Virus record (IMG/VR): IMGVR_UViG_3300043436_004687
Location: 124,001-188,000 of that record
Length of the DNA: 64,000 nt
Reading direction: 5' to 3' (one strand)
How positions within the stretch are numbered: the stretch's first letter is position 1; every line of letters starts with the position of its first letter. Position numbers and translations under genes: made by a program. Positions 391-30,553 of the stretch are shown piece by piece. The notes below the pieces were generated by a model. The model saw only the letters and a list, made by a program, of their open reading frames with translations. It was not told where the DNA came from and searched no databases.

Positions 391-489
391 TTTATTATAT
401 TTTATTCGGAATGTATTACGTATATTCCGATCTTAATGGTGTTAAGTGTTTATTTTATTGGTGTTGATGAGTGTGTTTACATATAGGTG

Positions 490-669
490 TTATACGTCAG
501 TTTGCTTAATCAAGCCTTTTGGCATATAACATTTAGTGCAATACAAATCACCGAAGCGTGGATGAACAGCAAACTCGTGGTCGCAAACCGAACGTATAAC
601 ATTGGTTTGTGGCAAGTGCGGTTTCTGAGGTTTAACCAACTTTAGTGCTTCTAATAATCTTCGTATCAT
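490..669 (-). CDS. 59-aa small protein with putative zinc finger, cassette-borne
   Basis: Manual translation: MIRRLLEALKLVKPQKPHLPQTNVIRSVCDHEFAVHPRFGDLYCTKCYMPKGLIKQTDV*; CxH...CxxC motif; A-rich leader. Confidence 0.6.
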   Translation of the reverse strand: MIRRLLEALKLVKPQKPHLPQTNVIRSVCDHEFAVHPRFGDLYCTKCYMPKGLIKQTDV

Positions 670-726
670 AATTTAAGTTTTGTACTTTTAATTCCGCACC
701 TGACCACAAGCCAAGTGCCGTTAGCA
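594..726. mobile_element. attC-like integron cassette recombination site
   Basis: GTATAAC (594-600) ... GTTAGCA (720-726) cores; imperfect inverted arms TTGGTTTGTGGCAAGTGCGG (602-621) / CCGCACCTGACCACAAGCCAA (694-714) with one bulged base; higher GC than surroundings. Confidence 0.7.
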
Positions 727-1041
727 GTCATTGCGCAACAACTTAATGTCTTTAACTAGGTTTACAACTGTTTTCATCCAATCTTCTTTAAGTATTCCTG
801 CATCATATTTTAACACAAATTCTGCATTCTCTATCATGTTATCTAATTCTGCAATATTATAATGCAACGAACTACTAACAGCATTTTCATACAATTTCAA
901 GGCTTGGTAGTTTTTAGCAAACTGAATTACTAAATCAATTGCTTTTGAAAGTTCTTTTGGTTCAGCCATTGTAACTTCTTCTGAACCTTTTCGCCATTTA
1001 TTATGGTTTTTTAAAATTTTTATTGCTTTTTGAATTTTCAT
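721..1041 (-). CDS. hypothetical protein, cassette-like
   Basis: 106-aa ORF (HNKWRKG...PKELSKAID); its TAA stop lies in the attC core. Confidence 0.7.
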   Translation of the reverse strand: MKIQKAIKILKNHNKWRKGSEEVTMAEPKELSKAIDLVIQFAKNYQALKLYENAVSSSLHYNIAELDNMIENAEFVLKYDAGILKEDWMKTVVNLVKDIKLLRNDC

Positions 1042-1087
1042 AATTTTTGTGATTTTTAGTGATTAATATTTGCAACTGTCTATAACC

Positions 1088-1279
1088 TCAATCGTTATCC
1101 CATATATCACCTATACTTTCAAATATCCATCCTAAACAATCCCCAAACCAATCTAATAGCATTAGTTCTATTAGAAAGTTTATAAATCCTGTGTATGGTG
1201 CAAACATCACCCTGATAATTCCGATTAGGATAATTATTCCAAGTATCATTAACCCTATTGTCATTAAAATTTCCATCAC
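1088..1279 (-). CDS. small membrane protein
   Basis: 63-aa ORF, hydrophobic N-terminal helix, acidic tail. Confidence 0.6.
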   Translation of the reverse strand: MMEILMTIGLMILGIIILIGIIRVMFAPYTGFINFLIELMLLDWFGDCLGWIFESIGDIWDND

Positions 1280-3451: not shown

Positions 3452-5554
3452 TTAAAAATCAATCGACATCTCGATCATTATTGTTTGACCTGGAACTAAT
3501 TTTATTGGTTTACTTATTTTACCAATAATCACCAGGTTATTAGAGTTATCATAAACTCCAACCTCACTAACCTTTATCAAAGGTGGGTTTGTAATTGAAT
3601 CACTATTTCTAGTTGGGTTAGTAGTATTATTGAATAAACCAGAATCAATTCTAATATCAAATAAAGTTTTGAATATTTTAGCACCAATAAATGCCTCAAC
3701 ATTACCATAAAAAAATCTTTCATCACCAAATTGTAAGATATTAGTATTTACCTCTGGTGTCATAGATAAGAAAGTTGTAATGTCGTATTGTGTTGCTGCT
3801 GAATTAACTACATTATTAATAACTTGATTATTAAAATATGAGTTTTGATTTTCCAATAAATTAGGATCAATTGATTGACCAGTGATATTAGTTATATTTG
3901 AACTAGTATAATCAGCTACCTTCCAATTATTTGGGTTAGGTCTATCATTATTAGTTACAATTTGATAAATTATTTTAAATTTATATGCATTAAAACCAGA
4001 ATTACCTTGTGTTTCCATTTTTCGCATATAAGGTAATAAATCGGTATCACTAATTCTAAACTCAATATCTTTAGGATTTGAATTATTATTAGTAACCTTA
4101 ACATAACTTTGACAATGTAAGCTAGAATTTAAACCACTTAAACCACCACCTAAAAGATAAGTAACGTAAATTGTTTCGTCTTTATTTAATAAACCATTTG
4201 AAGTACCACCAGTTGGATTTGCTAAATTAATTGATAATTCGGGTAGCGTCCAATTACGATTAGATTTATATGATGTGGCAGCAACTATTTCAGAATCATC
4301 AAAAACAACCATTTTTAATTGTGGGAATACCTTTCCAACTACTTTAGGTTCTCTAGTAATTAATAAATTAGGGTCTTCAATTAAATCAACGAATTCAATT
4401 TCACTATTACCTACTAATTGAGTTTCACCACTAGCGATAAAACTCATACCCATAATATTACCAGTACCAGTACCACCACTAAACTCTCTTCTATGGTACA
4501 TTAAATTAGGTAAATGAACTTTAACAGTTTTATTTTGAGAATTATCTATATGGAAAAATTCGCCATATAAATTAGAAATTGTGTTATTGGTATAATGTAA
4601 TAATGAGATTGATTTTTTAAAAGGGTCTAAAATACCAAAATTTACATTAGAATCACAATTACTAACAAAACTACTACCACTTAAACTTAAATTGTTATTA
4701 TATTCCAAATAATAATCCACCTCACCTAAATAATCTTGTGAACCAAATTTACTATAGTTTTGATATGTACTACCAGTCATACCTGCAATACCTTCCATAA
4801 AAATTGAATTCATGTTCCAAACGGGGACATCTTCCCTAGTGATATCGCAACTAGAATCAAACGATAATGTACCAGTATCCCAATATGCTGTAGTTGTACC
4901 ACTACCAAAACCATTATATACCTCACCGCCAGAATATATCATCACTAAGGTTTCAACTGAGAATGTGAAATTAGGTAAATTCCTATCTAATGTTAAATTA
5001 TAACCATTAATAGATTGAATTTTAAACCATAAAATTGGATTAGGTTCATTGTTTAAATATGTATCAACACCTACTTTTATTAAGACCAAATCCCCCACAG
5101 TAAAACCAGAATTCAAAACATTTAAAATTTTAGAACCATCTAAATCATCTGACTGAATTGTAGTGCTAAATTTAATATAATTATTTGAAATATTGGTGGT
5201 AAAACCAGAACCCGTATTAGTAAAAAATCCCCTTTCAGTTGCTTCATTATTAACAGTTAATTCAATAGTTTTTAAATTTGAATTATTTATTGGTTGTAAA
5301 TAAGTAGAATTTGAACCACCAATAAAGTATTTTAGATTTGGTTGGGAATCTTTAGGTCTTAAAATTTTAGCATCCTTAGATAAATCAACATCGTTTGGGA
5401 AAGAATCTTTTAAGAATTCTCTAGAATAATTAATTTCAGAATCACCAATAGCCCAATTAGAAAAAGTTAATTGACCCTTACTAAGCAATTCTCGACCTTT
5501 TTGAGTCAATTTAGCACTTATAAATGGATTTGTTTTACTTATTATGAAACTCAT
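3452..5554 (-). CDS. virion structural protein (baseplate/tail-collar-like)
   Basis: N-term LTQKGRELL..WAIGDSEINY and C-term SEVGVYDNSNNLVIIGKISKP. Confidence 0.55.
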   Translation of the reverse strand: MSFIISKTNPFISAKLTQKGRELLSKGQLTFSNWAIGDSEINYSREFLKDSFPNDVDLSKDAKILRPKDSQPNLKYFIGGSNSTYLQPINNSNLKTIELTVNNEATERGFFTNTGSGFTTNISNNYIKFSTTIQSDDLDGSKILNVLNSGFTVGDLVLIKVGVDTYLNNEPNPILWFKIQSINGYNLTLDRNLPNFTFSVETLVMIYSGGEVYNGFGSGTTTAYWDTGTLSFDSSCDITREDVPVWNMNSIFMEGIAGMTGSTYQNYSKFGSQDYLGEVDYYLEYNNNLSLSGSSFVSNCDSNVNFGILDPFKKSISLLHYTNNTISNLYGEFFHIDNSQNKTVKVHLPNLMYHRREFSGGTGTGNIMGMSFIASGETQLVGNSEIEFVDLIEDPNLLITREPKVVGKVFPQLKMVVFDDSEIVAATSYKSNRNWTLPELSINLANPTGGTSNGLLNKDETIYVTYLLGGGLSGLNSSLHCQSYVKVTNNNSNPKDIEFRISDTDLLPYMRKMETQGNSGFNAYKFKIIYQIVTNNDRPNPNNWKVADYTSSNITNITGQSIDPNLLENQNSYFNNQVINNVVNSAATQYDITTFLSMTPEVNTNILQFGDERFFYGNVEAFIGAKIFKTLFDIRIDSGLFNNTTNPTRNSDSITNPPLIKVSEVGVYDNSNNLVIIGKISKPIKLVPGQTIMIEMSIDF

Positions 5555-7228: not shown

Positions 7229-9073
7229 TTAAATATTATTTAAAATTATTTCATCATTAACAAAATTAGGGTCACCTAAAATCGTAATTTTACCTAAAAA
7301 TTCAGACCCATCATCTATTTGATAGATATAAACCGAATTACATTTTTCAGTACTATTATCTATTTTTTTAGTTATTTCTATATTTTCATAACCTATTATA
7401 GGATAACTAATTATTCGTTCACAACTAAATAAACTATATTTTTTATAAACGAATTTATTATTATCGAAAATTGTATTACCAAATTTATATGTTGAACCCC
7501 ATAAAGTGGTTGATGGGATTAATTGTTCAACTAAATCAACCCAATTGTAATTAGTGTTAATTATATAATCAAATATTAAATCATAATTATAACCATTACT
7601 TTGAATATTACAGTTATTTAAACTAGCTACATAACCATCAAACAATTTTCTTAATACTGGATAAACACTTATAGTTTTTCTTGATTTAACATCAATAAAA
7701 TTAGAATTAATTATTTTATTGAAGTTTTCAACATTAATAAAATCTTTATAACCTAAGATGAAATCATCAAGTAAATGACGAGTACAAGAATTAGTATCAA
7801 TATAATTCATTACATCAAATTCTATGGCTCTAGCCATATTTAAATTTAAGTTTATTTCTTTTGAATTTAAGGCTAATTTACTATTATTAATTTCATAATT
7901 CGTTTCACTGTTTACTAAATCAAAAATTCTATTTTCATAAACTTCATTTACAACCCAACTTTTCTTATTATCAATAACCTTTTCTAATTTAAAATTAGGG
8001 CAATTATTTATTTCTAATGAATTAATTTCAACATAATTACATAATTTATCTATCTTTACATTATCTATTAACATAGATATTTCAATACCTATGTTGTCTA
8101 AATTAAACCCTATTTTTATTTCCTCATTTTTAATTAAATTAATTAAAGCTGGGTCAGTTATAGTTAAATTAAAATTATACCAATTTGAATTTAATGAATC
8201 GGGATTTAAAACTAAATTATAAACATTTAACAATTGATTAGTTAAATTATTGATTAAGGAATTACAGTCACCAATAATTTTAATACCACTATTAGGTAAC
8301 TGCAACTTATCTAATAAATTTAAACCATTAAATAGAGTATTTGTATAAACAACATCCATTTTTTTTGGTGATTCGAAAATATAACCCAATGTAGTTTCAC
8401 TAAGTTCTCTATTTACCAATCTTTCTAAACTCATTGTTATTGAAATACCACTCAATGAATTAATTACATTATTAACACCATTTTGACTTATCAATTGATT
8501 ACAATTAACCTCAATTAGATAATCAAAATTAATATTTAATGTACATTCTTCCGAATTATTAACATCAAAAATACTACCCTCAGAACCATTTGTGTTTAAA
8601 TACAATTTTGAGTTTAAATCAGAACAATCATCAACCCAAAAACACTTATTTAAATTTGGATTAAATCTAAACCCTAAATTGGAACAGCAAACACTACTCA
8701 AAGAAATATTAGTTGATCCATTATAAATAACACCATCATCTTTAAATACATAACTATCCATTAAATCACCATTCGTATCATTACAGACTGGTAAATCATT
8801 AACTGAAAAATCAAAAATAAAAGAATAAATACCAGTATCATTTAATATTAATTGTATAGACAATTCTTTACTATTAATCAAAGTATATTGGTGATTATTT
8901 AAATTTAAAATGTCAAAATTACTTTCGAAGATTAATTCATTACCCAATAATTTAAAACCAAAATCATATATTTTAGCATTATTCGTAAAATCCCAGGCAT
9001 TGAACCAAGACCCATTTATTAATTTATATAAATTAGTGTTTGAATCGAAAATAATATGTGAAGAAAAATTCAT
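7229..9073 (-). CDS. putative structural protein with Cys-rich motif
   Basis: 614 aa; CCSNLGF...CFW motif; WVDLVEQLIPSTTLW segment; operon context. Confidence 0.55.
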   Translation of the reverse strand: MNFSSHIIFDSNTNLYKLINGSWFNAWDFTNNAKIYDFGFKLLGNELIFESNFDILNLNNHQYTLINSKELSIQLILNDTGIYSFIFDFSVNDLPVCNDTNGDLMDSYVFKDDGVIYNGSTNISLSSVCCSNLGFRFNPNLNKCFWVDDCSDLNSKLYLNTNGSEGSIFDVNNSEECTLNINFDYLIEVNCNQLISQNGVNNVINSLSGISITMSLERLVNRELSETTLGYIFESPKKMDVVYTNTLFNGLNLLDKLQLPNSGIKIIGDCNSLINNLTNQLLNVYNLVLNPDSLNSNWYNFNLTITDPALINLIKNEEIKIGFNLDNIGIEISMLIDNVKIDKLCNYVEINSLEINNCPNFKLEKVIDNKKSWVVNEVYENRIFDLVNSETNYEINNSKLALNSKEINLNLNMARAIEFDVMNYIDTNSCTRHLLDDFILGYKDFINVENFNKIINSNFIDVKSRKTISVYPVLRKLFDGYVASLNNCNIQSNGYNYDLIFDYIINTNYNWVDLVEQLIPSTTLWGSTYKFGNTIFDNNKFVYKKYSLFSCERIISYPIIGYENIEITKKIDNSTEKCNSVYIYQIDDGSEFLGKITILGDPNFVNDEIILNNI

Positions 9074-9078
9074 AAGTT

Positions 9079-11331
9079 TTAATATTTACATAAATAATTA
9101 CCATTAGCTTGTAATTCAGGAGTTGTACCAACTGGACAACACTCTTGGAATGGTATTTCTTTGGTGAATTCACCATTTGTATTAATAAAGATTTGATATC
9201 CATTAGAAGATATTTCATGTAATAAGAAATCTTTACACAAATCTGAATTATTAACTTTCCACCTACAAACTGATGCACCATTAGTATCTAATTCACTAGT
9301 ATAACCCAAAGCAATACAACAATCACTATTAAAATTGTAGGTTGTTGATTCATCATTTAAAGTAAATAAAACTAAACCACTATCCATCAATTCAATTGAT
9401 TTATAATTACAAGTTAAATTAATTGGTTTTGGTGAAAAATTTATTTTTAAAACCCCCTTACAACTTTCAATAATGCAACCACACTCATCATATAATGGTG
9501 TTTTATCGTACTCTACAATACTACTACTTACAATTGGGCAATTGTTAGTGGTTAAAATAGTTTGTTGCACTATAGGTGAATTATCATTCAAATCACAAAA
9601 AGTACCTAATTGATTATTTAAGAATAAATTAGTTTTCTTAAATAAAATATCTTCATTTATTAGGGTAGTTGCTGAAAAAGATGGTATTAAACAATTAAAT
9701 TGATTAATATATTCATTACCATAATCATATGGCCCTAAATGAGGGTTATTACCAGTTAATATATCTAATTTTGAGTTGACCCCACCAGTTTCTCTAATCC
9801 ACAACCCACCTTTCTGAAAATAAAGATCTGGATTGTTAGGGTTTATTCTTGGGAAACCATCGTCATCGACATTTATAGACTCATCTAAAACTAAATTTAA
9901 GTTTTCCAACAACCTATTAAATAAATTAATATCTAATTTATTTTTAGCGACATATATAAATTCATTAAACTCAACTAAACCATTAGGAAAACCAAATAAT
10001 TTTAAGATAAATTCAATTGATTTTCTATTACCTTTAGATTTCCAAATCCAAGGTGTATTAATTATTAATTTTTTATAAAATTCTATATTATTTTCACTAT
10101 TATCAATAAATGGTAAATTATTCCAACCTAATAAATGGGCTAAACTTTTTAATTCTCTATCAACAACATTATCATTACCATCATAAGTAACAGTATAAAC
10201 ATTTGAAATACCATCAATAAAACTTTTGATTGAATCTAATTGCCTACCGTAAATATTTAATACTTTATTTATTTTTAAATCTAGCGTATCAAATTCTAAA
10301 ATTGAATTTGATACTAACAATCTACTTATAATATTAGATTTAGTATCATCAGAATTTTCAGAAATTGTAATTAATTTATTTACAAAATCAATATAATAAT
10401 CTGAATTAAAATCAATATTGTACCCGTCACTTATAGGCCAAATTATTTCAATTGTAGATTTGATAAGATTCCCCTCTTCAGTTTCAACGAAATAGTCAAA
10501 TTCAGATTTAAATTTAGGTGTTGTTTTATTGTTTAATAAATAGCTTTCAAAAACACTTAATTTTTTAAAAAAATTATCAACATTTACACTATTTGGTTTA
10601 ATATGATAAACGGTTGTATTAGTTAAACCAGAAAAAGGTTGACCACTTACTTTAAGATTAACATACCCATTAACTTCACCTATAAAATCTATTATCTGAT
10701 ATTCAATACCATCAACTGATAAAACATAATTAGAAAAGTTTTTATTTAAATTTCTAAGATCATTTAAAGGGTTTTTATTATTTAATGAACTCCCATTTAA
10801 ATAACTAATATCTAAGTTAAAATTATTATTAATAACGTTAACATTTATCGAGAATGTTGATTCACCTTTCAATTCATTAACCACATAATTATGAAAAGTA
10901 ATACCATTAAAACGTGGATTGTTTGGGTCTATCGGACTAATGAATAGTGATGCTGGCCAATTAATAATTATGTTTTCCAAACTAACCCTAACAAACTCTT
11001 TTAAAGAACCAAAATAAGCGTAATTTTTTAACTCTTTCTTATTAAAATTAATTTTTACTTCTTCTAATTCTTTTAAAATATTAGAAGCAATTGTTTTAGT
11101 TAGTTTTAAATCATCTAAAGAAGTTAAATTACCAAAAGAATTAGTTGAAAAAAATTTATCTTCTTTAGGTTCTAAATTCGTTGTAATATTAAAGTTACCA
11201 GAAGTAAATAATGGGGAATCATTATTATTTTGAAATTGATTCCCCACCAAACCACTCGAAAAAGGTCTATATTCAATACCATCAACGTATTGAATTTTCT
11301 TAGAATAACCAGCAACTTTAATTTTATTCAT
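9079..11331 (-). CDS. putative baseplate protein (P2 gpI / wedge-like segment) with Cys-rich C-terminus
   Basis: LAHLLGW...IWKSKGNRKSIEFILKLFG resembles the KGT..I...L..FG wedge motif. Confidence 0.55.
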   Translation of the reverse strand: MNKIKVAGYSKKIQYVDGIEYRPFSSGLVGNQFQNNNDSPLFTSGNFNITTNLEPKEDKFFSTNSFGNLTSLDDLKLTKTIASNILKELEEVKINFNKKELKNYAYFGSLKEFVRVSLENIIINWPASLFISPIDPNNPRFNGITFHNYVVNELKGESTFSINVNVINNNFNLDISYLNGSSLNNKNPLNDLRNLNKNFSNYVLSVDGIEYQIIDFIGEVNGYVNLKVSGQPFSGLTNTTVYHIKPNSVNVDNFFKKLSVFESYLLNNKTTPKFKSEFDYFVETEEGNLIKSTIEIIWPISDGYNIDFNSDYYIDFVNKLITISENSDDTKSNIISRLLVSNSILEFDTLDLKINKVLNIYGRQLDSIKSFIDGISNVYTVTYDGNDNVVDRELKSLAHLLGWNNLPFIDNSENNIEFYKKLIINTPWIWKSKGNRKSIEFILKLFGFPNGLVEFNEFIYVAKNKLDINLFNRLLENLNLVLDESINVDDDGFPRINPNNPDLYFQKGGLWIRETGGVNSKLDILTGNNPHLGPYDYGNEYINQFNCLIPSFSATTLINEDILFKKTNLFLNNQLGTFCDLNDNSPIVQQTILTTNNCPIVSSSIVEYDKTPLYDECGCIIESCKGVLKINFSPKPINLTCNYKSIELMDSGLVLFTLNDESTTYNFNSDCCIALGYTSELDTNGASVCRWKVNNSDLCKDFLLHEISSNGYQIFINTNGEFTKEIPFQECCPVGTTPELQANGNYLCKY

Positions 11332-29431: not shown

Positions 29432-30553
29432 TTATGATTCAGAAGAATCAATTGAAGAATTCTGATCATCCTCAGTTGAATAAATTATAGTTTCATTAAA
29501 ATCAACATTAAGAGCATTATGAATAAATTGTCTATGCTGTTTTTTATATTCATCTAATTCATCTGGATTCCAATATCCGTGTGGAGTTGATGCAATTTTA
29601 CCATTTCTTTCAATTCCATTAACATGATTTTTTTCACATCTAATTTTAACTTCAGTTCCATATTGAAAATCTTGCCCCAAAGCAGTAGCTTTTAATTTTG
29701 TAGTTCCATGTGTTAATATACCACCTAAATGAACTATTAATCTAGAATTAAAAAACATCATTTCACCGCATTTATGTTTAATAACACTACCATTCATATT
29801 ATCCAACCAAATTTTTTGAACACATACAAAAGTGTTAATATATGGACTATGTTCTCTTCTACTTGAAGGAATTCTACTAGTAGTTAATGGTTGAAAAACA
29901 TTCATAGCACCTGCATTCCACTGATTATTAGTTGTTTTAGAAGTTGCTGATTGATAACCATTTAAAGTTCCAATAGAATCCCAAAAAAATGCAATGTTAT
30001 ATGGGAATTCACCTTCAGCTTGTAAATCTAACATTTGGACCATAAATCTATGAACATCCTCAATAACTGGTTCATATCTTTGTACCTTAGATGTATTGGT
30101 ACTTGACTTATAATCATAAGTTTTAAACATATCATACAAATCTTCTGATTTTACAACTGTGAAATTACCATCATAATCAATAATTTCACCAGTTTCAGTA
30201 TCAACTATTTCAGTATATTGCATACCAACATTTCTAGCATGTTCCCAATTAAAATTACCCTCAGTTTCAATTATAATAGGCCAATCACCTATTTTTTGTG
30301 CTCCAGCAATACCTTCATAAAATGCAGTTGATTTACCTGTATTTGAATAACCTCTAACCATACTTACATACCCTCTTGGGAAACCTGGAATTTTTAATGC
30401 ATCATGAAATGCTTTAGATAAAGGAATCCATGTTAATTCTTTATCTTTAGCTGAATTAACTAAACCCAATTTTTCTTTAAATGATTTATTATCAAAAACT
30501 TTTTTCTCAATTGATGTTTTTTTTGGTGGTTTTGTAACTGTTTTTGCTGACAT
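29432..30553 (-). CDS. RecA/UvsX-like recombinase
   Basis: GFPRG, Walker A GYSNTGKST, IETE, FFWDSIG, CEKNH. Confidence 0.82.
   Translation of the reverse strand: MSAKTVTKPPKKTSIEKKVFDNKSFKEKLGLVNSAKDKELTWIPLSKAFHDALKIPGFPRGYVSMVRGYSNTGKSTAFYEGIAGAQKIGDWPIIIETEGNFNWEHARNVGMQYTEIVDTETGEIIDYDGNFTVVKSEDLYDMFKTYDYKSSTNTSKVQRYEPVIEDVHRFMVQMLDLQAEGEFPYNIAFFWDSIGTLNGYQSATSKTTNNQWNAGAMNVFQPLTTSRIPSSRREHSPYINTFVCVQKIWLDNMNGSVIKHKCGEMMFFNSRLIVHLGGILTHGTTKLKATALGQDFQYGTEVKIRCEKNHVNGIERNGKIASTPHGYWNPDELDEYKKQHRQFIHNALNVDFNETIIYSTEDDQNSSIDSSES

Follow-up and report, generated by a model that had tools for sequence, protein, structure and literature searches.

A proposed phage hairpin cassette that supplies the start of small genes

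Integron attC sites are imperfect palindromes of 57-141 bp that fold as single strands with an unpaired central spacer, extrahelical bases and a variable terminal structure, and the bottom strand is reported to fold more stably (PMC5371416). Their ends carry an inverse core, RYYYAAC, and a core, GTTRRRY. The attC site lies 3' of a mostly promoterless ORF with which it travels, and the first bases of a cassette are complementary to the inverse core at its other end, which is the signature of a circle opened at the core. Clusters of attC sites lacking an integrase (CALINs), some carrying DNA methyltransferase cassettes, have been published from phages, and TAAC..GTTA hairpins from phage PH101 were shown to recombine with the integron integrase IntI1 (Qi et al. 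2023, PMC9892861). However, P12002L_attC1, predicted as an attC by HattCI in Polaribacter phage P12002L, was the one of six phage sites that gave no verified IntI1 recombination in that study. In integrons, the attI1 region (ORF-11) occasionally supplies translation start signals, and sometimes N-terminal residues, to the gene inserted behind it.

Two further systems are relevant here. Promoter-early stem-loops (PeSLs) of T4-type phages are short conserved cassettes, consisting of a sigma-70 promoter plus a terminator hairpin, which lie between small non-essential genes in plastic genome regions, combine an expression signal with a recombination substrate, recombine by homology, mediate modular gene shuffling and produce mini-circles (Arbiol et al. 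2010, PMC2839356; Comeau et al. 2014, PMC4122927). Elements of the IS200/IS605 family, palindrome-associated transposable elements and REP/RAYT are strand-specific, structure-defined single-strand elements whose ends, recognised as hairpins, are moved by a Y1 HUH transposase and which insert 3' of a specific tetranucleotide.

We analysed a 64,000-nucleotide stretch (the window; positions 124,001 to 188,000 of IMG/VR record IMGVR_UViG_3300043436_004687) of a complete 339,635-bp phage genome. An earlier note on this sequence had claimed that a 59-aa ORF begins at an ATG in the loop of an attC, that its first ~24 codons are the hairpin itself and only ~35 lie outside it, that the loop carries an internal repeat, and that the arm asymmetry suggests that the ORF is antisense to the usual cassette orientation. 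From this, it inferred that the recombination site supplies the start and N-terminus, and that exchange between sites could build new micro-proteins. The features of the locus are as follows, in window coordinates.

597..723 (-): the hairpin module H1, 127 nt; on the gene strand, TAAC (723-720), 4-5 unpaired bases (719-715), 5' arm (714-694, with a bulged T at 703), loop (693-622), 3' arm (621-602), T601 and GTTA (600-597).
667..669 (-): the start codon ATG inside the loop, preceded by an A-rich stretch without a Shine-Dalgarno sequence (ACAAAACTTAAATT).
490..669 (-): the 59-aa ORF, MIRRLLEALKLVKPQKPHLPQTNVIRSVCDHEFAVHPRFGDLYCTKCYMPKGLIKQTDV, to which one entry, P0001, is 93% identical, with a 23-codon hairpin-encoded leader, V24 from the GTTA core and a 35-aa Cys/His body (C-x-H...C-x-x-C).
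489..600 (-): the cargo module, 112 nt, bounded by GTTA (600-597) and TAAC (492-489) and closed by its own inverted repeat (5' arm 583-600, 3' arm 489-506); the stop TAA (492-490) lies in the terminal TAAC.
720..723 (-): the TAAC core at the left boundary of the cassette, overlapping the stop codon (721-723) of the upstream 106-aa gene.
721..1041 (-): the upstream 106-aa gene, whose 3' end (GCAATGACTGCTAAC) looks like a cassette 3' arm; a degenerate partner arm (GTTATAGACAGTTGC) lies at 1072-1086, with an arm duplex of only -9.6 kcal/mol, at best a weak remnant.
1083..1097 (-): a junction without a hairpin (TAAC, 7 nt, GTTA) between the 63-aa gene (1088-1279) and the 106-aa gene.

The observation made in the earlier note is confirmed by the sequence. 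Codons 1-16 of the ORF lie in the roughly 72-nt loop, codons 17-23 (PHLPQTN) are the 3' arm, V24 is the GTT of the core, and the remaining 35 codons lie outside the hairpin. The hairpin has a duplex energy of -30.8 kcal/mol and is the only TAAC..GTTA hairpin above chance in the genome, which holds no other copy; it forms a 41-47% GC island in a 22-31% GC neighbourhood. Thus, the local picture is of a single acquired cassette rather than an array. The arm asymmetry is also real, with 4-5 unpaired bases (719-715) next to GTTA 720-723 on the + strand against 0-1 on the other side. However, the 15-nt internal repeat (641-655 / 678-692) is not supported as meaningful: it matches at 11 of 15 AT-rich positions, and by eye the two segments are no more alike in the other H1 copies, so we treat it as chance. 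The note had missed that the part of the ORF outside the hairpin is itself enclosed by the second inverted repeat, 583-600 / 489-506. Its duplex energy is -22.5 kcal/mol, against -5.1 +/- 2.5 for random GTTA/TAAC arm pairs, and none of about 2000 random pairs reached -20.

H1 is not a chance feature. At least 30 distinct copies occur in viral and metagenomic contigs. In an alignment of H1 copies, the ATG is nearly invariant, 8 of 20 stem pairs show changes on both sides and 95.7% of cells are paired; 0 of 500 shuffles reach this, and slid controls collapse. TAAC and GTTA are present in all but one row of the alignment (locus L007, one of the related loci fetched for comparison and numbered L, carries TAAC three bases inward), and they flank every strong GC-rich hairpin in the two arrays checked. 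The full 7-mers of integron cores fit only partly, being GTATAAC and GTTAGCA on the + strand of the window. Of the 73 hairpins scored in related loci and the window, 62 show the same geometry (TAAC, 4 unpaired nt, about 20-bp stem, GTTA), with a sharp mode of length at 125-131 nt. The gene-sense strand folds better than its complement, with 118 against 48 G.U pairs and a mean difference of -4.1 kcal/mol (p = 1.8e-7).

The note's interpretation is only partly supported. Whether the frame is preserved across homologous sites had been set as a test beforehand, and it is: in 45 of 48 H1 copies the ATG sits exactly 69 nt before the GTTA core and the ORF is open. The same leader is fused to at least 13 unrelated cargo families in the fetched loci, and to about 48 mutually unrelated cluster representatives among 1.84 billion. 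Exchange at this site has therefore repeatedly produced new chimeric micro-proteins, their translation being inferred from evolutionary signatures. The cargo bodies of three families are under purifying selection (pN/pS 0.07, 0.08 and 0.35), whereas the leader in the same ORFs gives 1.16, 2.41 and 0.69, with much lower synonymous divergence, so the leader is conserved as nucleic acid rather than as peptide. A role of the leader as a targeting or signal peptide was rejected on the same ground, and because the same DNA motif is read in another frame in a lipoprotein signal peptide (L008:3978) and other hairpin families encode unrelated leaders. The orientation guess of the note fits the data, because the unit that travels together is the hairpin plus the ORF downstream of it; if the hairpin is read as an attC, the ORF is antisense to the usual cassette orientation.

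A chance open frame across a structural intergenic element, not translated, appears very unlikely in view of these signatures. It is true that the 59-aa protein matched no Pfam or PHROG family, that the gene caller skipped the ORF in the sister assemblies L057 and L058, and that the AF2 model is weak (mean pLDDT 60.6, too low to support a fold search). In that model, the leader is predicted as disordered and residues 30-50 as a beta-hairpin at pLDDT 77-79. However, in addition to the fixed ATG and the selection on cargo bodies, the Cys/His spacing is conserved among the relatives of the window's cargo, and annotated DNA methyltransferases start the same way in other hairpins.

Several lines of evidence bear on mobility. 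The two ends of a cargo match each other at 7.8 of 12 positions, whereas neighbours across a hairpin match at 3.9 and random pairs at 4.0 (p = 3e-13). The 311-nt unit of H1 plus the KEWYLEF cargo sits in at least 9 different upstream and at least 12 different downstream contexts, with each boundary right after TAAC, and this cargo has H1 upstream in every fetched copy that includes its 5' side. The H1 of the window is of the L007/L026 subtype, while its cargo differs from that of L006 by 1 nt in 112 and the flanks are unrelated beyond TAAC, indicating mosaic inheritance. A lake-water sequencing run (X3) holds a strain variant of this same phage with an insertion of about 1.1 kb exactly at TAAC|GG; the 1510-nt contig reads window 836->718, then 1117 other bases, then window 723->450, with both flanks identical to the window. 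No duplication flanks the unit, the sequence to its left ending in TAAC and that to its right being unrelated, which does not fit a MITE or other terminal-inverted-repeat transposon. A search for an empty site found no relative of the neighbouring primase in viral contigs and no other contig with the 3' end of the 106-aa gene, and L057 and L058 have the same 330-nt gap.

Taken together, we propose, with a probability of roughly 0.55, that window 489-723 (minus strand) is one copy of a two-part mobile gene cassette circulating among phages related to Flavobacterium phages. In this view, the first part is the attC-like H1, whose large loop carries an A-rich translation start, and the second is an exchangeable cargo closed by its own 17-18-nt inverted repeat, here encoding a 35-aa Cys/His (zinc-knuckle-like) peptide. 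The hairpin would be kept by selection on base pairing in the gene-sense strand and on an open frame with a fixed ATG, not by selection on the peptide it encodes. The analysis itself establishes the structure and its covariation, the fixed ATG and preserved frame, the dozens of cargos behind the same leader, module boundaries that fall exactly at TAAC/GTTA, the complementarity of cargo ends, the mosaic inheritance of H1 and cargo, and the strain variant with an insertion at the TAAC. The mechanism of exchange, by contrast, is inferred: that cassettes move as units opened right after TAAC, by strand-specific, structure-guided recombination on single-stranded DNA of the gene-sense strand, that the enzyme is not encoded by this phage, and that the hairpin also serves as a portable, context-insulated translation start. 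Closed into a circle, a unit would read arm'-TAAC, one-sided 4-nt spacer, about 20-bp stem with a bulged base, loop and GTTA-arm, i.e., an attC-like folded site. However, only 4 nt are invariant at the cores, and chimeric hairpins with non-matching arms (L030, L037, L018:5019) show that plain homologous recombination inside the conserved loop also shuffles these elements.

A genuine integron attC, recombined by a host integron integrase as part of a CALIN and simply inverted, would account for the 127-nt imperfect palindrome, the AAC/GTT cores, the one-sided 4-nt spacer, the bulged T, the variable 72-nt loop, the complementary cargo ends and the better-folding strand; conserved C.A and G.U positions are also present. 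The arrays of small genes in related phages, including orphan DNA methyltransferases, resemble phage CALINs as well, and P12002L_attC1 belongs to the same hairpin family. Nevertheless, this reading is unlikely, and calling the element an attC is not supported or unproven. First, the hairpin lies 5' of the ORF with which it travels and contains the start codon and first 23 codons of that ORF. Second, the spacer and the bulge lie on the arm next to the module boundary, which is mirrored relative to canonical attC bottom strands, and the outer arms are 14-18 nt long rather than 7. Third, no intI, attI or tyrosine recombinase (Phage_integrase, PF00589) was found in this genome or in a second complete genome of 430 kb that carries H1, and the only tested relative was not verifiably recombined by IntI1. 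The one integrase hit, in another phage record (G003), does not overlap the 12-kb locus that holds that record's hairpin array. Any enzyme would thus have to be host-encoded or of another family. A search of Rfam 15, which may or may not hold an attC model, gave no match at gathering score in the window or in 8 related loci, with only chance-level hits at E of 0.13 or higher, and tRNA/tmRNA searches of the same sequences found nothing. Relative to integrons, where an attI-supplied start is occasional, every copy of this hairpin carries the start and the fusion is the rule.

An element working mainly at the RNA level is a possible but less likely alternative. The hairpin and the cistron-closing stems would then be mRNA structures, presenting a start codon in an open loop for Shine-Dalgarno-less initiation in Bacteroidota, protecting mRNA ends or forming an endonuclease processing site after UAAC, and shuffling would be a by-product of ordinary homologous or illegitimate recombination between conserved regulatory cassettes, as with PeSLs. 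All hairpins are co-oriented with the genes, the sense-strand G.U bias fits an RNA-level role equally well, and in about 27 of about 42 hairpins of 120 nt or more (a hand count) the ATG and the A-rich upstream stretch lie in the loop. The chimeric hairpins and the lack of a recombinase in the two complete genomes also fit this view. As with PeSLs, the elements are repeated between small non-essential genes, with arrays of 5-9 hairpins per roughly 10 kb in related phages against about 1 in shuffled sequence, and module boundaries coincide with the elements, as does the insertion in the strain variant. However, closing stems span cargos of up to about 1.5 kb, some enclosing two genes, and are unlikely to persist in translated mRNA, whereas they arise automatically if a circular cassette is opened inside a folded site. 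A purely regulatory role does not predict the invariant TAAC/GTTA or the exact coincidence of all module boundaries with them, and the 4 nt of shared core that remain where H1 plus cargo entered this unrelated AT-rich genome are too little for homologous recombination. No U-tract follows the stems, so they do not look like intrinsic terminators. Unlike in PeSLs, the stem encloses the translation start and is part of the coding sequence, module boundaries fall at 4-nt cores, and each cargo has its own closing repeat.

A non-autonomous single-strand transposon of the IS200/IS605 / REP-RAYT kind, moved by a host Y1 transposase, is improbable. The unit does begin right after a TAAC that belongs to the neighbouring sequence and ends with its own TAAC in every context examined, folding is strand-specific, the hairpin lies 4 nt from the left boundary, and arrays could grow because each unit brings a new TAAC target. 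However, no Y1_Tnp (PF01797) match was found in the four phage records searched, including both complete genomes. Furthermore, there is only one subterminal hairpin, which is coding, whereas two related hairpins, one at each end, are expected for this family, and H1 and cargo also exchange at the internal GTTA, which this model does not predict.

More tentatively, and less likely than not, Bacteroidota phages may carry a previously unrecognised cassette system independent of integron integrase, in which an attC-like hairpin sits in front of each gene, supplies its translation start and N-terminus, and acts as the crossover site on the gene-sense single strand. Swapping cargos behind a leader would then routinely create new chimeric micro-proteins and spread them between unrelated phages, from 38-kb siphoviruses to 430-kb jumbo phages. 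Phage early regions are full of tiny orphan genes whose gain, loss and expression are poorly understood, and this element is a concrete, sequence-defined vehicle for them, fused in frame to about 48 unrelated small proteins, many of them Cys-rich, with boundaries exact to the base. If the exchange is enzymatic, it points to a new recombination system acting on folded single strands; if it is not, the element is a clear case of an expression element that guides modular evolution in the way PeSLs do.

Cultured Flavobacterium phages with known hosts, for example vB_FspS_lillamy9-1 of Flavobacterium sp. LMO9 with 9 hairpins in 4.4 kb, carry arrays of such hairpins, and an annotated DNA methyltransferase starts in one of their loops, so the question is accessible at the bench. 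H1 itself had no match in cultured phage records, where other hairpin families of the same kind are present, and Cellulophaga phage phiST, which shares one neighbouring gene with the window, has no such hairpins. A scan of a genome collection with the H1 arm gave two hits, in contigs of 63-68% GC labelled Arthrobacter and Geminicoccaceae, which are chance matches and give no host lead. A junction without a hairpin similar to that at 1083..1097 is seen at L008:3906-3915. There is also a consequence for annotation, as gene callers skip or mis-start these ORFs and in places call spurious ORFs across the hairpins.

The 339,635-bp virus record (window at bases 124001-188000) has direct terminal repeats, i.e., it is a complete jumbo phage, and it comes from lake water. 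The first 3 kb of the window read mostly 22-31% GC in 100-nt windows, whereas the element studied here lies in a local GC island of 41-47%. All genes in this region are on the minus strand. The 59-aa ORF at 490-669 lies in a 330-nt gap between a 106-aa gene (721-1041) and the start of a DnaG-like primase (1-390), and it is skipped by the gene calls in L057 and L058, two near-identical sister assemblies. A small 10-bp hairpin (TCGGAATGTA / TATATTCCGA) lies at 406-430, just upstream of the primase start at 390, and no U-tract follows it. Further upstream of the ORF, a 63-aa membrane-protein gene (1088-1279, minus strand; phrog_20459) is 84.5% identical at the DNA level to a gene of Cellulophaga phage phiST and its relatives. 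This is the only nucleotide match in the first 3.5 kb, so the gene looks like an isolated, horizontally exchanged small gene. It ends at a junction of TAAC, 7 nt and GTTA that has no hairpin, and phiST itself has no such hairpins.

The observation made in the earlier note, i.e., that this ORF starts inside the loop of a hairpin and reads through its arm, holds. On the gene strand, the hairpin reads as follows (window coordinates, minus strand):

723-720, TAAC
719-715, 4-5 unpaired bases
714-694, 21-nt 5' arm with one bulged T
693-622, loop of about 72 nt
621-602, 20-nt 3' arm
601, T
600-597, GTTA

The ATG at 669 lies in the loop, codons 17-23 (PHLPQTN) are the 3' arm, and V24 is the GTT of the core. 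The duplex energy is -30.8 kcal/mol, and this is the only TAAC..GTTA hairpin above shuffle level in the whole genome. The note also described a 15-nt internal repeat in the loop; however, this repeat is not conserved in other copies and is treated here as chance. A second feature was not recognized in the note: the remaining 35 codons are enclosed by a second inverted repeat, GTTATACGTTCGGTTTGC (600-583) and GCAAACTGACGTATAAC (505-489), with a duplex energy of -22.5 kcal/mol. Random GTTA/TAAC arm pairs give -5.1 +/- 2.5 kcal/mol, and none of about 2000 reached -20.

A word search with the 59-aa protein found only two proteins, one of which was 93% identical, while the other shared only the first 24 residues and then differed completely. 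Subsequent DNA pattern scans found the hairpin, termed H1, in 13 viral contigs and 30 metagenome contigs, which gave 30 distinct sequences, nearly all exactly 128 nt long. In an alignment of 27 copies, 8 of the 20 stem pairs show changes on both sides (21 cells) and 95.7% of cells are paired. No shuffle out of 500 reaches the observed values, and sliding the partner by 1-3 columns collapses the pairing to 31-49%. A C.A mismatch, a G.U pair and the bulged T are themselves conserved. No match to an Rfam family or to a tRNA was found.

In 45 of 48 H1 copies the ATG lies exactly 69 nt before the GTT of the core, and the ORF runs through the 3' arm into at least 13 unrelated bodies. Since the word search and the family scans had left the protein unassigned, a profile of the first 30 residues was searched against 1.84 billion cluster representatives, which returned 51 proteins at E of 0.001 or better. 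About 48 of these are proteins of 53-125 aa that begin with the leader and continue with bodies less than 50% identical to each other, many of which are Cys-rich. Within three cargo families, named here by sequence motifs, the bodies are under purifying selection in this frame, with pN/pS of 0.07 for KEWYLEF (10 alleles), 0.08 for PMTYDQ (5 alleles) and 0.35 for NPYQ (4 alleles). The leader in the same ORFs gives 1.16, 2.41 and 0.69, respectively; its synonymous divergence is several-fold lower, and third codon positions show no excess variation. Compensatory arm changes alter the peptide (PHLPQTN to PRLQQTD) while keeping the pairing. In addition, the motif ATGTTAGCGGNAGTGCT is read as NVSGSA after H1, whereas in L008, one of the related contigs, the same motif is read as MLAVVL inside a lipoprotein signal peptide. 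The leader is therefore a stretch constrained as nucleic acid whose translation is inferred from these evolutionary signatures, and what is selected is a start codon and an open frame. The AF2 model agrees, in that the leader has low confidence and residues 30-50 are predicted to form a beta-hairpin at pLDDT 77-79. The Cys/His spacing of the cargo recurs in its relatives.

H1 belongs to a larger system. Related contigs carry 5-9 TAAC..GTTA hairpins per roughly 10 kb, against about 1 in shuffled sequence, and all are co-oriented with the genes. Of the 73 hairpins scored, 62 have the same geometry on the gene strand, i.e., TAAC, 4 unpaired bases, a stem of about 20 bp, a loop, the returning stem and GTTA. 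Their lengths fall into two classes, one of 49-96 nt and one with a sharp mode at 125-131 nt. The strong GC-rich inverted repeats found without reference to TAAC/GTTA are the same elements. The long class often holds an ATG in the loop that opens the downstream gene (about 27 of about 42 cases by hand count, including DNA methyltransferases), whereas short hairpins are followed by a start 20-60 nt after GTTA. Downstream of the short hairpins in four related contigs (L006, L008, L012 and L018), a recurrent motif, GTTA-NNN-GCTGG-N-GCGGATTATTAAAC, lies 20-40 nt upstream of start codons. This motif resembles the junction between the 5' arm and the loop in H1 (GGTCAGGTGCGGAATTTGAAAC), and it may be a promoter or another expression signal. 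The gene-sense strand folds better than its complement, with 118 against 48 G.U pairs and a mean difference of -4.1 kcal/mol (p = 1.8e-7). However, this sense-strand bias fits an mRNA role just as well as a role in DNA exchange, and an RNA-level role, with shuffling in the manner of PeSLs (PMC2839356), is the main rival to the exchange reading that we favour below.

Several lines of comparative evidence indicate that the modules move. Each cargo is bracketed by arms that begin with GTTA and end with TAAC, and a cargo's own two ends match at 7.8 of 12 positions, whereas arms facing each other across a hairpin match at 3.9 and random pairs at 4.0 (p = 3e-13). A wobble or bulge is conserved about ten base pairs in from the core. 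The 311-nt unit of H1 plus the KEWYLEF cargo occurs in at least 9 different upstream and at least 12 different downstream contexts, and every boundary lies right after a TAAC. The H1 of the window is of the subtype seen in the related loci L007 and L026, while its cargo differs from the L006 cargo by 1 nt in 112, and all flanks are unrelated beyond the cores. In another lake-water sample (run X3, record 3), a 1510-nt contig reads window 836->718, then 1117 other, unread bases, then window 723->450, with both flanks identical to the window. A strain of this same phage therefore carries about 1.1 kb more, inserted exactly at the TAAC|GG junction left of H1 (718-723), and unitigs in two other runs break at the same place. 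Plain homologous exchange also happens, as shown by chimeric H1 copies at three related loci (L030:2854-2981, L037:700-826 and L018:5019-5143), in which the 5' arm comes from another hairpin family so that the two arms no longer pair. The leader and cargo remain intact in these copies, which shows recombination inside the conserved loop and suggests that the stem is not strictly needed for the gene to persist.

If a unit (linker, hairpin, GTTA-arm, cargo, arm'-TAAC) is closed into a circle, its ends would form one long imperfect hairpin, with an outer stem made of arm' and arm that includes TAAC and GTTA, a one-sided 4-nt spacer, an inner stem of about 20 bp with a bulged base, and a variable loop. 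This is the layout of a folded attC site, with features as described in PMC5371416, and it would explain the complementarity of each cargo's own ends without any need for pairing across a gene. We therefore favour structure-guided, strand-specific exchange at the TAAC cores on single-stranded DNA of the gene-sense strand, in which the hairpin would also serve as a portable translation start for a host group that initiates without Shine-Dalgarno pairing. While the conserved pairing, the fixed start and frame, the module boundaries and the complementary cargo ends are observed directly in the sequences, these mechanistic steps, i.e., circle formation, the exchange on single strands and the role in translation initiation, are inferred. 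Against this reading, no tyrosine recombinase or Y1 transposase is encoded in this genome or in the complete 430-kb genome that carries H1. A 217-aa protein with a RuvC-like Holliday-junction resolvase match (phrog_159, E = 2e-6) is encoded at 1586-2239 on the minus strand, about 0.9 kb upstream of the cassette, and a structure-specific nuclease this close may or may not be relevant to hairpin processing.

Clusters of attC sites without an integrase were reported in virulent phages by Qi et al. 2023 (PMC9892861), several with methyltransferase cassettes. Their P12002L_attC1 is the 49-nt hairpin found here at 30008-30056 of Polaribacter phage P12002L, and it shares its loop with L008:4791-4839, so it belongs to this family. 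However, this site was predicted by HattCI alone, and it was the one site of six without verified IntI1 recombination, whereas the PH101 sites, which are also TAAC..GTTA hairpins, did recombine. The interpretation in the earlier note is supported in part: its central inference, that the site supplies the start and N-terminus so that exchange could build new micro-proteins, is supported by comparative data, whereas the label "attC" is a resemblance and not an established membership. What appears to be new is the long hairpin class with the start codon in its loop, the systematic in-frame fusion to many different cargos, the closing stems of the cargos, and the reversed gene orientation relative to integron cassettes.

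Cultured Flavobacterium phages also carry arrays of these hairpins, and vB_FspS_lillamy9-1 (MN812212; our L059) has 9 in 4.4 kb. In this phage (locus 3516-3623 and 2447-2576), the annotated CDS gp008 lies almost wholly on a 93-nt TAAC..GTTA hairpin (3509-3601) and is probably spurious, and the annotated DNA methyltransferase gp009 starts inside the loop of a 130-nt hairpin. The paper that describes those phages contains none of the words hairpin, stem-loop, palindrome, intergenic or inverted. Finally, two tandem copies of H1 plus a relative of the window's cargo (VIRSVCGHE...EQTDV) occur on one contig, L044, at 9011-9035 and 9602-9626, in which the parts encoded by the arms are conserved and the middle differs.
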